The position numbers and the translations under genes are program-made. Of a stretch of DNA of 64,000 bases, positions 17,200 to 26,100 are shown piece by piece. Position 1 is the first letter of the stretch. Each line of letters opens with the position of its first letter. Source of the DNA: Macrostomum lignano (taxonomy: Eukaryota); NCBI GenBank assembly GCA_002269645.1, contig NIVC01002701.1, positions 1 through 64,000 of the forward strand, given 5' to 3'. The notes under the pieces were generated by a model. The model was not told the DNA's origin and ran no database searches. It worked only from the letters and a program-made list of their open reading frames with translations.

Positions 17200-20100
17200 A
17201 TGAGCATGGAACCCGCTGACCAGCATGAGCTGAGCTCACCTGTCAAGCAGTTCTGCAGCTACACAAGTGCTCACGGACTGGGCAGATTCTCTGAGCAGTC
17301 CAGCTTCATCGGCAGGTCACTATGGCTCACTTTTCTGTTGGCTACCTACAGCGGGTTCGGCTACCACCTGTACACCCTGTTCGACAGGTACCAGCAGGCT
17401 CCGGTGTTAACAACGATAACGGTGTCCACTCTGCCGTACCAGTTCCCGGATGTGTACATCTGCCCGACTCACGCCGTCACCATGAGTAGAATTGTTCCAA
17501 TGCTTTCTCAACGCGACATTTATAATGTTGAGCACGTTTCGAAAAGCAGCAATCCCAGCGAAAAGATTAAACTGTACGAATTTGACTTGTCGACACCCAG
17601 ACGCTTCTATCTAAACATGCCGACATATGCTTTTCTGCGTGCCTTAGAAGTTACGGAGCAGACAATGATAGATCAGCTACAGCCTTCAAAAAACGGTAGG
17701 GATTCTGCCAGATAATCTAGAAACCTTAAATCCATATACTCAAAATGACTCATATTCACTTCAGCCAAAAGAGGCTATGCCTGCCGGACCAGCCTAAATG
17801 GTGAGGAGTACATTGGAAACGCAAGCTCGGCAGCCGTCTATGGGGTCACTAGCTTTTCTTTGGAGTCTATCGACTACAGAAACACAGCTGGGCCACCTGT
17901 ACCGCCTTACATAGCCTACAGGCAGTGCATGCGATGGAATGATGCAGCACGCATGCTGCAGAGAGGAAGCTCGAATGCTGAAGTACTGGGTGGCTTGCTG
18001 ATAAAACTCAACTTCTCAGAGACTGAGTCCAGGTGCCGCTCACCTCCGGGTTTGCCGCTGACAGCGTTTCTCCCAATTGCAACTCGTAAGTGACTGACTT
18101 AGCGAGTGAGTGAGTGAGTAAGTGGAGTGAGTAAGTGAGTGAGTAAGTGAGTGAGTTCAAGAGTGAGTGAGTTCAAGAGTGAGTGAGTTCAAGAGTGAGT
18201 GAGTTCAAGAGTGAGTGAGTTCAAGAGTGAGTGAGTTAAGAGTGAGTGAGTTCAAGAGTGAATGAGTTAAGAGTGAGTGAGTTCAAGAGTCGCTCACTCA
18301 CTCACACACTCACACACTCACTCACTCACTCACACACTCACTCACTCACTCACTCACTCACTCACTCACTCACTCACTCACTCACTCACTCACACACACT
18401 CACTCACTCACTCACTCACTCACTCACTCACTCACTCACTCACTCACTCACTCACTCACTCACTCACTCATCCACTTACTCACTCACTCACTCACTCACT
18501 CACTCACTCACTCAATCAATCACTCACTCACTCACTCACTCACTCACTCACTCACTCACTCACTCACTCACTCACTCACTCACTCACTCACTCACTCACT
18601 CACTCACTCACTCACTCACTCACTCACTCACTCACTCACTCACTTACTCACTCACTCACTCACTCACTCACTCACTCACTCACTCACTCACTCACTCACT
18701 CACTCACTCACTCACTCACTCACTCACTCACTCTTAACTCACTCACTTAACTCACTCACTCTTGAACTCACTCACTCTTAACTCACTCACTCTTGAACTC
18801 ACTCAATCTTGAACTCATTCACACTTGAACTCACTCACTCTTAACTCACTCACTCTTAACTCACTCACTCTTGAACTCACTCACTCTTGAACTCCTCCCT
18901 CTTAACTCACTCACTTAACTCTCACTTAACTCACTCACTCTTGAACTCACTCACTCTTAACTCACTCAATCTTGAACTCACTCACTCTTGAACTCACTCA
19001 CTCTTAACTCACTCACTAACTCACTCACTCTTAACTCACTCACTCACTCACTCTTGAACTCACTCACTCTTGAACTCACTCACTCTTGAACTCACTCACT
19101 CTTGAACTCACTCACTCTTGAACTCACTCACTCTTGAACTCACTCACTCTTGAACTCACTCACTCTTGAACTCACTCACTTAACTCACTCTTGAACTCAC
19201 TCACTCTTAACTCACTCACTCTTGAACTCACTCACTCTTGAACTCACTCACTCACTCACTCAGTATTGAACTCATTCACTCTTAACTCACTCACTCTTGA
19301 ACTCACTCACTCTTAACTCACTCACTCTTAACTCACTCACTCTTGAACTCACTCACTCTTGAACTCACTCACTCTTGAACTCACTCACTCTTGAACTCAC
19401 TCACTCAGTATTGAACTCACTCACTCTTGAACTCACTCACTCTTGAACTCACCCACTCTTGAACTCACTCACTCTTGAACTCTCCCACTCTTGAACTCAC
19501 TCACTCTTGAACTCACTCACTCTTAACTCACTTACTCTTGAACTCACTCACTCTTGAACTCACTCACTCTTGAACTCACTCACTCTTGAACTCACTCACT
19601 CTTAACTCACTTACTCTTGAACTCACTCACTCTTGAACTCACTCACTCTTGAACTCCTCACTCTTAACTCACTCACTCTTGAACTCACTCACTCTTAACT
19701 CACTCAATCTTGAACTCACTCACTCTTGAACTCACTCACTCTTGAACTCACTCACTCTTGAACTCACTCACTCAGTATTGAACTCACTCACTCTTGAACT
19801 CACTCACTCTTGAACTCACCCACTCTTGAACTCACTCACTCTTGAACTCTCCCACTCTTGAACTCACTCACTCTTGAACTCACTCACTCTTAACTCACTT
19901 ACTCTTGAACTCACTCACTCTTGAACTCACTCACTCTTGAACTCACTCACTCTTGAACTCACTCACTCTTAACTCACTTACTCTTGAACTCACTCACTCT
20001 TGAACTCACTCACTCAGTATTGAACTCACTCACTCAGTATTGAACTCACTCACTCTTGAACTCACTCACTCTTGAACTCACTCACTCTTGAACTCACTCA

Positions 20101-23100: not shown

Positions 23101-26100
23101 GATTTCATTAATCATTGAATTACAATTAGGACATTGATAGCCTCTGCGTGCGATCGCACTCTCTCGTACTGTCCCAATGGAGTAATGCCTTAGGCCCTCC
23201 TTCGCCTCGATCTACAGCGTGGCATGGTGACAAATTTAAAGAGATTCTGGCACTCATAAATTAGTCACTTCAAAACAGACGGAACGATAGTAATAGTAAT
23301 GTATAAAAATAATCGGAGGACTTTGACTTTCTAATCGTCAGACATTTACACTCTCTATGCCTTGGTACTTGGCCTTCATGTGCGTGGATTGCACGACAAC
23401 TCCCAGTTAATTTTTTGAGCACAAACCCCAAATTAATGTGGCCGGATTCGAACCAGGGGGTGCTTCAGCGTTACTCAAAGCTAAAGTTGCGATTCAATTT
23501 CTTTGGGGAATTTGTGGTTTTCTGATGCTTTTTCTAGTAGAGCTACTGCACCCAGTTCTAGAAAATATTTGGTACTTCTCCACAACTTATATTTCTAGAC
23601 AAAAATTTTACTTATTAATGAAAACAGATCAAAAAGAGAACATCATATATCATTTTTTATTGTGTAGCATACTACACAGAAAGTGAAATACTTGATTAAA
23701 CTTTGGGGTAAAAAACAGAACTCAGCGAAATTCCTTTCTAGGAATCGAACTATTCGGCAAAATGGTTCGTCTGCTGATTCAAACCCCGGACCGCATCGAA
23801 GACACGAGTGACAACTTCTGCAGGCCAGCGAGTATCGTCATCGACGTGTTGGAAACTGACAGCGGAGCCTTCAAGTGAGTCGAAGTACTCCTAGAGTTCA
23901 TTGTGAGAAATGATTATATTAATTTTGATATTTTATTTTTTGTACGAACTGCATTTGTAGAAGACAAATTGTTTCCGGCTCCGTGCCAGTCTGCTTTCCG
24001 GCGGCTGCTCAGCTGCACATGAGCAGTGGCCGAATTTCTCTGCAGAACTTCTTTCTGATTGGCGTTGAAAAATGCAACATACCCGTGTGCTGTAAGTCAG
24101 CTAAGTATAAGTCAGCCACTTTAGCGTTAAAAGTCCTCCATTTGGACGCTACGAGCGTACTCGTATGTCTTTTCAATATCTTTTCAATCTTTTCATTATA
24201 TTTTCAATATTCAATATTTCAGTTTTCAATATCACATCATCCAGCATTTTTTAATTTGTGTGGCATTGAGACTTGAGGACCCCAGTAAAATTATTAGTAC
24301 ATAGTATGATTTCATGATCAATCAGGCAAAAATTCGATTCATCAGTTGTATGGGAGACACCACCGACGAGGAAGGTATTCATGCAATCGATAAGGCAGGT
24401 ATACCAGAGGTACCATCGATGAGGCAGGTACGAGTATACCAGAGACGCCATCGTGGGAGCCATCGTAGGCGCCAGCCGAAGGGGCACTGGCACCAGGGGT
24501 GGGACCTCCAGCCAGCTGGGAGGTTAACCCCCTTGGTACGAGTAAACCACCTCCCGCAAGACTTCATTGGATTAGTGTATTTTTACTTTTGCAAAAATAT
24601 AGCAGTAAGCAATTTTCACACCAATTAAAATGCGCTTGTACTTTCAGCAAGCAAAACCGTCGTCAGAGGCGCCTTCACTGACTCGGTCGGCAGCCACCTG
24701 CTCGCCAGGCAGTTCAGCAACGACCTCAGCATCGGCCTGGCCGACTGCACCTTCGCTGGCCAGAAGTGCACCAAGGAGCACTTCGTCAATATCGACCATC
24801 CGCAGCTGGGAATGTGCCACCAGTTTCTCAAGCAGAGCTTCATCGCCAACATGTCGAGCACCCAGCTAGCAGGGAGTCAGCTGTCGATCACGTACTTCAC
24901 CGACTCGACAGACTGTAAAGGGAAAACCGTCGAAGAAATACCCGAAATGAACTGTGCATTTCGCAATGGAATGAGCACAGATACTGGTTCATTAGCTTTC
25001 AAGGTAAGAGCTTGATTTGTTGATAAGAAGGGAATTACTCGCATCAATCATTCCCCAATCCGCTTTGTCAGTTTTATAGATATCGCTAGCACTACTCGTG
25101 AAAGTTCTAGCAGTCAGAATTTTTGTTGGATGCAGAAGCCCTCGTGATTACTAAAAGTCGCCGCCACCCAAACCCCCAGGCGGTCATTGTTCCGGAGGAC
25201 TCGTTTCCCTGGTCGTCCAAGGGCATCGACGTGGCCGCCTCCCAGCGCATGGACGTGCAGCTCAGGTTCGAAAGATACTCCAGACTCTCAACTGCATCGA
25301 GGCCATGCCTAGAGACCACCGAGCCGATTGTATATCGACTGCCGACTTGGGAGAAGTCCATGTCAAATGAGGACCCAAAGTGAGCAGTTTCTGTTGTACA
25401 GGTAACTTTTATGGGAATATGCAACAATCGATTCCTACATGCAGCTCCAAATTCCTTGCTTGTCAAGAGTCTGGGATGCGGCAGACTGGATGGCAGTCGC
25501 AAAGGATTGGAAGGAGATGATAGCCAGATTCCGGGCGATGCTTCTGTTGCCGAACAGTTCCAGGTGGGTGCAAATTTTCAACAACACTGTTGCTGGGTCG
25601 CACGCAGACGTTAACCCCTACAGGGATAGAAATGACCTTCCACGATGTTACCAAGAGTGCTTTTGAATGCTATATATAGATAGCTATTTAAGGAACTTAA
25701 ATAATTTCTGGTTTAATTAGTTTTAATGAATCGCTGTATCCTCATCTCATCCAGCGTTCTGACTGCTACTGAGCGACAGTTCAACGTCTCCGATAGAGAG
25801 GACTGCATCAACTCGTACATTGTGCAGCAGTTCATCGAGAACTGCAACTGTTTACCGTCGATTCTGCCAGTCAAGGTGGACTTATTCGACCAGTACAGCT
25901 ACTGTTTCGAAGTCAAGGACATCAGAAACTTGTCTATCGATCTTGAGACACGGTACAATGAGCAGGTATCGCGGATAAACCAGTACGAGTTTGAGGCTAT
26001 GAAGCGCTGCCAATCTCCGTGTCGCACAGACGGCTACAGTGTCCGTTACGTCACTTATCCGTGGCCGAACCTGAAGACTGCCAGATCCATTCCGCTGCTA

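Follow-up and report, generated by a model that had tools for sequence, protein, structure and literature searches.

A WSC domain nested in a divergent kringle, followed by a second kringle, in the finger of two DEG/ENaC channel genes of Macrostomum lignano

A head-to-head pair of channel genes

We describe a pair of ion channel genes found in a stretch of 64,000 nucleotides (nt) of the Macrostomum lignano genome (assembly GCA_002269645.1, contig NIVC01002701.1, positions 1 to 64,000 of the forward strand), which we call the window and to which all coordinates refer. The two genes, g1 and g2, are paralogues of the DEG/ENaC family placed head to head with 6.1 kb between them. In both, the region coding for the finger of the channel contains an insert made up of a divergent kringle, interrupted by a complete WSC domain in the loop between its third and fourth conserved cysteines (Cys3-Cys4 loop), and then a second divergent kringle.

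Gene g1 occupies 17200-26790 of the forward strand and g2 11100-5245 of the reverse strand. The latter was located by a tblastn search of the forward-strand open reading frame (ORF) pieces against the window, in which every piece matched again on the reverse strand. Exons were joined at GT-AG splice sites and by comparison of the two paralogues. The resulting models have 11 exons each in the same layout and code for 1004 (g1) and 1013 (g2) amino acids (aa), with both ORFs intact. Splice sites are canonical except for the exon-10 donor of g2 (5814-5808), which reads GGAG/GAAATC, with no GT, where g1 has GGAG/GTAAAT; with the GT found 6 nt further on, the frame is preserved and Asn-Arg is inserted directly ahead of the conserved GALGLWSG motif, which precedes the second transmembrane segment (TM2). 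The exons are listed below, with K1 and K2 standing for the first and second kringle and K1a and K1b for the two parts of K1.

17200-17695, forward strand: g1 exon 1, ending in phase 1; N-terminus with the HG motif, first transmembrane segment (TM1), FPDVYICP strand and helical part of the finger
17765-18085, forward strand: g1 exon 2, phase 1-1; K1a, the N-terminal part of K1, with Cys1, Cys2 (QCMRW) and Cys3 (RCRSPPG); aligned to kringles by hhalign and, at positions 1-16 and 21-59, by a kringle hidden Markov model (HMM)
18086-21718, forward strand: g1 intron 2, 3.6 kb, nearly all ACTC/GAGT-type microsatellite arrays
21719-22012, forward strand: g1 exon 3, a single symmetric phase 1-1 exon; WSC domain with 10 cysteines, identified by Pfam, profile search and Foldseek
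22179-22298, forward strand: g1 exon 4, phase 1-1; K1b, the C-terminal part of K1, with GPYCFF (Cys4) and LCDVPYC (Cys5, Cys6)
22806-22955, forward strand: g1 exon 5, phase 1-1; K2a, the N-terminal part of K2 (FDC...YTG..N.S.SG.DC.PW)
23742-23874, forward strand: g1 exon 6, phase 1-2; middle part of K2 (K2b; IQTPDR...DNFCRP, Cys3)
23961-24091, forward strand: g1 exon 7, phase 2-1; C-terminal part of K2 (K2c; PVCF, KCNIPVC)
24648-25003, 25180-25379, 25755-26371 and 26594-26790, forward strand: g1 exons 8-11; extracellular remainder from CTFAGQKC onwards, TM2 with the G-I-S filter motif, C-terminus and stop codon; matched by Pfam ASC and, in the PDB, by FaNaC, ASIC and ENaC
11100-10608, reverse strand: g2 exon 1
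10219-9884, reverse strand: g2 exon 2 (K1a)
9318-9025, reverse strand: g2 exon 3 (WSC)
8948-8829, reverse strand: g2 exon 4 (K1b)
8661-8512, 8156-8024 and 7950-7817, reverse strand: g2 exons 5-7 (K2)
7740-7385, 6949-6750, 6436-5814 and 5447-5245, reverse strand: g2 exons 8-11

Exons 2-7 of g1 comprise 1149 nt or 383 codons, which give 384 residues when the two split codons are included. The insert of g2 has 390 aa, and each of the two contains 22 cysteines. In g1 the insert is flanked by FPDVYICP (aa 82) and CTFAGQKC (aa 582). A first-pass annotation of the window, made from the sequence letters, had reported DEG/ENaC genes with about 380 extra residues between these two motifs. The motifs it quoted are all in frame, and the interval it delimited, 17696-24647, runs exactly from the first base of intron 1 to the last base of intron 7 of g1. 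It had also described modules bounded by phase-1 introns, and this description holds: introns 1-7 of g1 have phases 1,1,1,1,1,2,1, with K1a, WSC, K1b and K2a each forming a symmetric 1-1 exon and the whole of K2 being 1-1 with one internal phase-2 intron. Such symmetric modules, with phases shared by at least two paralogous loci, are consistent with exon shuffling into a channel gene. Very long microsatellite arrays, (GAGT/ACTC)n, (CAGA)n and (CTGA)n, are found in homologous introns of g1 and g2 (18086-21718, 22300-22790 and 9370-9880). The extreme GC skew at 18-22 kb (about -0.6) is a consequence of these tetranucleotide repeats filling the introns.

Outside the insert, the Pfam family ASC (PF00858) matches g1 with 152.4 bits against a cut-off of 23.6. 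The match consists of one stretch on either side of the insert, of which the stronger spans aa 576-959 (profile positions 150-455); the paralogues score 84-147 bits. The hallmarks of the family are present in g1, namely HGLGRF (aa 25), TM1, the two flanking motifs mentioned above and the G-I-S filter motif of TM2 (aa 943). Moreover, the hydrophobic maximum lies at aa 942-965, and the TM2 region aligns with those of FaNaC, ASIC and ENaC. By their sequences, g1 and g2 are DEG/ENaC subunit genes, predicted to encode channels with two transmembrane segments, as had been proposed.

The core without the insert finds its best PDB matches in FaNaC (7yvb, E 1e-17; 8on7, E 3.5e-16), followed by ASIC5, pickpocket 26, ENaC and ASIC1. 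The core alignment breaks between residues of about 163 and 187 of 7yvb, and the insertion point falls after the helical segment of the finger, about 30 residues ahead of the CxFxGxxC strand. Judging from this position and from the two ASC stretches, the insert lies in the finger, where the first-pass annotation had placed it; the six extra exons occupy a phase-1 intron position where the finger helices end, and the insert is predicted to be extracellular.

The finger is the most variable and insertion-tolerant part of the DEG/ENaC family. In FaNaC1, the finger helices alpha1-3 form the agonist pocket and closure of these helices sets off the rotation by which the pore opens, while the ion- and protease-binding sites of ENaC occupy the same corner of the finger (PMC11026163). 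FaNaC and the neighbouring platyhelminth and phoronid branch of DEG/ENaC channels resemble the g1 core, sharing with it the G-I-S filter motif and GLW.GIS.LT in TM2. Additionally, the finger of FaNaC is the ligand-binding element that initiates gating, and the insert sits in the finger too. However, FaNaC fingers consist of short helical segments with no kringle or WSC domain, and the likeness to g1 and g2 is confined to the core sequence. In the one functional study found to include DEG/ENaC channels of M. lignano, three channels from the FaNaC-adjacent branch, encoded by genes other than those described here, did not respond to RFamide-type peptides (PMC9234716).

Kringle and WSC modules of the insert

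The WSC module of g1 reaches 29.2 bits with Pfam WSC (PF01822) when taken alone, above the cut-off of 27.8, and 24.6 bits within the full protein. Among the paralogues (designated here by P numbers), the isolated module of P0004 scores 33.1 bits and the full-length P0013, P0015 and P0016 proteins 39.1, 41.1 and 43.0 bits, respectively, while in the P0010 lineage the domain falls below Pfam detection. The WSC domain announced by the first-pass annotation is therefore present, but its place is a different one. The WSC exon stands between CRSPPG, at the position of the kringle motif NYCRNP (Cys3), and GPYCFF, at the position of GPWCY (Cys4). The order along the gene is then N-terminal part of K1, WSC, C-terminal part of K1 and K2, that is, kringle(WSC)-kringle, nested and not tandem. 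The modules listed before were all found; the WSC is nested in K1 and does not lie between two complete kringles, as the sequence kringle, WSC, kringle had implied.

The only Pfam family matched by the two remaining modules is Kringle (PF00051), with 13-17 bits in g1 against a gathering cut-off of 34.3. Since they fail the standard of Pfam itself, four other tests of homology were applied. A profile of K2 compared with PDB sequences retrieved almost exclusively kringle proteins (HGF, prothrombin, tPA, uPA, ROR1/2; best E 2e-4). The corresponding profile of K1 without the WSC, built from g1 and g2 only, gave no significant match in the PDB (E about 1 to the C-terminus of the ROR1 kringle).

A four-paralogue profile of the whole insert was also searched against 1.84e9 representative proteins and gave 321 matches. 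Those at profile positions of about 100-205 are multi-WSC proteins, and those at about 210-295 are genuine multi-kringle proteins (E 9e-23 to 1e-6). The latter positions correspond to the end of K1 plus the start of K2, the kind of stretch that tandem kringle arrays are expected to match. The best kringle match is a six-kringle protein of the invertebrate Darwinula stevensoni (A0A7R9A7C9, E 9e-23), whose identity was checked by Pfam and source names. Such multi-kringle proteins are the closest sequence relatives of the kringle modules, with which they share CK.T..G.EY.G..N.T.SG..C.PW, NFCRNP, PWCF, YCD[IV]PFC and variable Cys2-Cys3 loops. They differ in being secreted and in having tandem, uninterrupted kringles of 76-101 residues.

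From these matches we excised 29 kringles and built a custom HMM. With it, K1 minus its WSC-containing middle scores 28-39 bits and K2 22-40 bits across seven paralogues; the g1 and g2 modules score 28-35 bits, compared with a maximum of 10 bits over 1000 shuffles of each. Using hhalign, K1 without the WSC aligned to template columns 1-87 of 87 (probability 97.8%, P 1.2e-12), and K2 gave the same probability (P 8.4e-13). When the WSC was retained in K1, the alignment was limited to the last 23 residues.

In an alignment of seven full-length inserts, six conserved cysteines occupy the canonical motif positions in both K1 and K2; in canonical kringles, the disulfides join cysteines 1-6, 2-4 and 3-5. 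We conclude from these comparisons that both modules are real but divergent kringle homologues. Neither is a compact, uninterrupted kringle of about 80 residues. K1 has 112-122 residues without the WSC-containing interruption of its Cys3-Cys4 loop, which itself has 115-139 residues. K2 has 128-140 residues, with insertions in the Cys2-Cys3, Cys3-Cys4 and Cys4-Cys5 loops; the one in the Cys3-Cys4 loop, the same loop that holds the WSC in K1, is shorter. Thus, of the two kringle-like domains proposed in the first-pass annotation, homology was upheld by profile, HMM and hhalign comparisons, although with scores below the Pfam threshold and long insertions. One consequence is that Pfam-based annotation misses both kringles in the channels that carry the insert.

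An AlphaFold2 (AF2) model of the insert based on 11 paralogue sequences had a predicted local distance difference test score (pLDDT) of 59.5 and a predicted template-modelling score (pTM) of 0.54; a model from a four-sequence alignment (pLDDT 40) was unusable. In a Foldseek comparison of the first model with the PDB, the top four matches were Kremen ectodomain entries (E 6e-4 to 8e-3), and the next one was the WSC domain of yeast Wsc1 (probability 0.99, target-normalised TM-score 0.53). The matches in the WSC region rest on a part of the model with a pLDDT of about 35-65. Such a result supports a WSC fold in the model and the comparison with Kremen, which had been cited before as a precedent for the co-occurrence of kringle and WSC.

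The Kremen1/2 ectodomain (PDB 5fws-5fwv) is the nearest protein we found with kringle and WSC together and the top Foldseek match (E 6e-4), but global TM-scores with the insert model are low (0.17-0.22). Kremen has a tandem kringle-WSC-CUB arrangement on a single-pass anchor, whereas here the WSC is nested, there is a second kringle and the host is a channel with two transmembrane segments. No CUB match was found in g1 with Pfam. The cell-wall mechanosensor Wsc1 (PDB 7pz2) resembles the modelled WSC region in fold and likewise presents a cysteine-rich extracellular module, which engages a glycan-rich matrix. Unlike the products of g1 and g2, this sensor spans the membrane once, has a single WSC at its N-terminus and contains no channel.

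Paralogues, transcripts and divergence

In M. lignano, at least seven groups of paralogues share the layout of the insert. It is found in the full-length proteins BOX15_Mlig006056g1 (P0004, 1049 aa), BOX15_Mlig007204g1 (P0013, 1052 aa) and BOX15_Mlig026586g1 (P0161, 1091 aa), and in all three models a single ORF runs from the N-terminal ASC part through the insert to the C-terminal ASC part. The BOX15 annotation was built on RNA-seq assemblies, combining StringTie/TACO with de novo transcripts, and its ORFs come from TransDecoder (PMC5730564). Accordingly, paralogue transcripts that join both channel parts and the insert exist. At the unlinked locus of P0004, a paralogue roughly 40% identical, the exon junctions, read by eye, showed the exon boundaries and the phases of introns 1-6 (1,1,1,1,1,2) of g1, and the introns are short (about 60-180 nt).

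Public models of the two genes in the window are less complete. UniProt A0A1I8G6R9 is g1 minus exon 4, identical residue for residue, and A0A1I8HN37 is g2 minus the first 17 residues of exon 4, through the internal acceptor TTATTCAG; both stop after exon 8. The disagreement at exon 4 reflects either alternative splicing or an annotation error. Exon 4 holds Cys4-6, so that skipping it would leave three cysteines of K1 unpaired. The first-pass annotation had considered transcripts that skip exons 2-7 altogether. The RNA-seq-derived models of the paralogues include the insert, and the models of g1 and g2 themselves are partial, lacking exon 4 in one case.

A search with the insert among 5.8e9 proteins returned three matches only, all from M. 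lignano, and insert, core and full-length profile searches of the same index retrieved only this species. In neither the 5.8e9-protein index nor the 1.84e9 representatives was there a protein outside M. lignano that covered more than one module of the insert. In the databases searched, the layout is specific to the M. lignano lineage; the full-length profile search scored 8000 candidates, and therefore absence outside Macrostomum is not proven.

In the full-text literature, ENaC, degenerin and kringle together led only to a review on protease activation of ENaC, "WSC domain" and "amiloride-sensitive" to nothing, and degenerin and WSC only to a paper on mechanoperception in plants, which is unrelated. 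A literature search for expression data under the gene identifiers of the paralogues found nothing. These full-text searches brought up no published description of the architecture. The earlier statement that no characterised example was known therefore stands for the literature, but the combination of ASC and WSC is already in UniProt under the automatic name "WSC domain-containing protein" (Pfam WSC plus ASC), though undescribed. The kringles and the nesting are unannotated there, except for one K2 fragment of a paralogue named "Kringle domain-containing protein".

The divergence between g1 and g2 differs strongly among exons, as can be seen from the synonymous divergence (dS), the ratio of nonsynonymous to synonymous divergence (dN/dS) and the amino acid identity:

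Exon 3 (WSC): dS 0.05, dN/dS 0.90, 91% identity
Exon 4 (K1b): dS 1.45, dN/dS 0.08, 82% identity
Exon 5 (K2a): dS 0.84, dN/dS 0.62, 39% identity
Exon 6 (K2b): dS 2.86, dN/dS 0.09, 63% identity
Exon 7 (K2c): dS 1.47, dN/dS 0.45, 37% identity
Exons 8-10 (core): dS 0.19-0.27, dN/dS 0.14-0.28, 87-94% identity

The 3' half of exon 2 and the entire WSC exon are almost identical in the two genes (9025-10100 and 17900-22012), compared with a dS of 0.8-2.9 in exons 4-7. This near-identical stretch looks like a gene-conversion tract between inverted paralogues, and the mosaic divergence indicates an old duplication partly homogenised by gene conversion. Every insert exon has a dN/dS below 1, and the value for exon 4 is the lowest among exons, which argues that exon 4 is coding despite its omission from A0A1I8G6R9. 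Moreover, with identity among paralogues as low as about 30%, none of the 22 cysteines has been lost, and the kringle, WSC and core motifs persist as well. The cysteine framework is under purifying selection.

Possible roles of the insert and neighbouring features

Judging from the sequences, we consider the chances about even that the insert is a built-in macromolecule-binding or anchoring module on the finger, gating or tuning the channel. It would bind or anchor an extracellular glycan or protein partner, be it matrix, glycocalyx, mucus or a secreted protein. Engagement of this partner, or force passed through the insert, would shift the finger and thereby gate or tune the channel. The fast-evolving K2 would probably set the choice of partner in each paralogue.

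Within this framework, a tether or anchor would be favoured over a diffusible ligand. WSC domains engage glycan-rich matrices, mechanosensors of the DEG/ENaC family are thought to depend on extracellular tethers, and we know of no DEG/ENaC channel opened by a soluble macromolecule. For these reasons, a tether to matrix or glycan is the role that we would favour by analogy, although it is possible rather than probable. It is more doubtful, given what the sequences offer, that these are self-anchoring DEG/ENaC channels whose nested kringle(WSC)-kringle binds matrix or glycan polymers, with each subunit bringing its own gating tether or acting as an ionotropic macromolecule receptor, and with second kringles that differ between paralogues defining different partners. 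If this were true, the genes would provide a natural channel with a built-in extracellular tether and a rare case of an exon-shuffled, disulfide-rich module inside the loop of another.

In the DEG/ENaC family, protons, peptides, force and proteolysis all act through the same variable finger region, and it is a long-standing question which extracellular tether carries force to the mechanosensitive members. Adhesion or binding modules fused to the finger are a tractable natural experiment on the coupling between partner and gating, in an animal where transgenesis is possible and RNA interference workable. Additionally, the genes illustrate clearly how exons can be shuffled into a channel gene, and how a domain can be nested within a kringle.

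Several points weigh against a binding module that gates or tunes the channel. The Pfam Kringle matches in g1 and its paralogues are partial and remain below the threshold (10.6-18.4 bits). The insert model is only of medium quality, and therefore the packing of K1a and K1b around the WSC is not demonstrated. Where lysine-binding kringles show CRNPDGD, K1 has CRSPPGLPL and K2 CRPASIVID; the canonical acidic residues of the lysine-binding site, in plasminogen kringles the acidic pair after the NYCRNPD motif and a feature of only some kringles, are absent from both modules by sequence, and no ligand class can be transferred to them. For this reason lysine binding, which the first-pass annotation had carried over from other kringles, should not be assumed. 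The divergence of K2 (37-39% identity between g1 and g2 in exons 5 and 7, against 84-94% in the core) could reflect relaxed constraint instead of selection for new specificities. In the only public models of g1 and g2, the sequence ends after exon 8 and exon 4 is treated in conflicting ways. Finally, the exon-10 donor of g2 may mean that this gene is mis-spliced or impaired, or may be a sequencing error.

The first-pass annotation had proposed receptor-channels gated by a macromolecular cue, a reasonable reading, which roles as tether or anchor, as regulator or as a purely structural element would fit equally well. On this reading the channel would be an ionotropic receptor, opened when a diffusible cue such as a soluble glycan, protein or protease docks on the kringle/WSC module. 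In its favour, the insert sits on the finger, the part of FaNaC to which the peptide agonist binds. Both WSC and kringle serve in binding elsewhere, for example in Kremen, and K2 diverges strongly among paralogues, as different ligands would predict. However, no candidate ligand has emerged, the kringles lack the lysine-binding residues, the DEG/ENaC agonists known so far are all small (protons, peptides, bile acids) and nothing separates this reading from tethering. From the sequences, we regard it as unlikely.

It is less likely still that the insert has no part in gating and serves in folding, trimer assembly, trafficking or localisation (e.g., by retaining the channel in an adhesive organ or sensory cilium), or that it is no more than a decoration tolerated in this lineage. 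The insertion-tolerant nature of the finger, the restriction of the layout to one lineage and the raised dN/dS (0.45-0.62) in parts of K2 are in its favour, but the 22 cysteines and the motifs are kept at about 30% paralogue identity, and dN/dS is about 0.08 in exons 4 and 6. That at least seven groups of paralogues have been retained speaks for a function under selection.

The ENaC finger with its GRIP domain resembles the insert in being a large, lineage-specific elaboration of the finger, and GRIP regulates gating from outside the cell (PMC11026163). An autoinhibitory or regulatory module akin in role to GRIP, holding the finger in a low-activity state until cleavage or displacement, would fit the location of the insert in the same finger domain as the protease-sensitive tracts of ENaC. 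It would also fit a furin-like RPRR motif found exactly at the K1a/WSC junction of g1 (aa 273-276, about 21719-21730) and g2 (aa 277-280). Among the groups compared, however, only g1 and g2 carry this motif, once each. Besides, kringle disulfides would keep the pieces joined after a single cut. ENaC is regulated by excising inhibitory tracts, and fold and sequence of GRIP are unrelated to the insert. Such a role appears improbable.

That the models are an artefact, with the kringle and WSC exons belonging to a separate gene nested in a channel intron or with pseudogene loci, is highly improbable, for although the public models of g1 and g2, the GA at the g2 exon-10 donor and the richness of the region in microsatellites and retroelements may point that way, the exons lie on the same strand in compatible phases with no stop codon in 1004 or 1013 codons, the insert exons have no separate start codon or signal peptide, the same structure occurs at an unlinked locus with short introns, the paralogue models derived from RNA-seq are single ORFs, and purifying selection is evident. 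For g1, a separate nested gene and a pseudogene were both rejected as largely refuted; for g2, the exon-10 donor leaves doubt.

Other features of the window lie between and beyond the channel genes. An ORF pair at 13824-14795 (reverse strand), between g1 and g2, shows a weak match to DUF3504 (27.9 bits against a cut-off of 29.7), a domain typical of sequences derived from Crypton elements or tyrosine recombinases, and may represent what is left of a transposon in the upstream region that g1 and g2 share. At 29403-30770 (reverse strand), RVT_1 matches (49 and 33 bits) in ORFs separated by a frame change point to a degraded retroelement of the non-LTR (long terminal repeat) type. UniProt A0A1I8FAW6 (P0005) is a chimeric model that fuses this retroelement sequence with g1-like channel parts. 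A multi-exon gene on the forward strand (about 41800-50700) has a PSI (plexin repeat) match and W-S-x-W-S/C-S-R-x-C stretches resembling thrombospondin type-1 repeats, followed by a segment that looks transmembrane, and is probably semaphorin-5-like. A coding-like repeat with a 24-nt unit was found at 46093-46400, and a tract of low GC content (0.26) with a GC skew of +0.93 extends from about 36000 to 38000.

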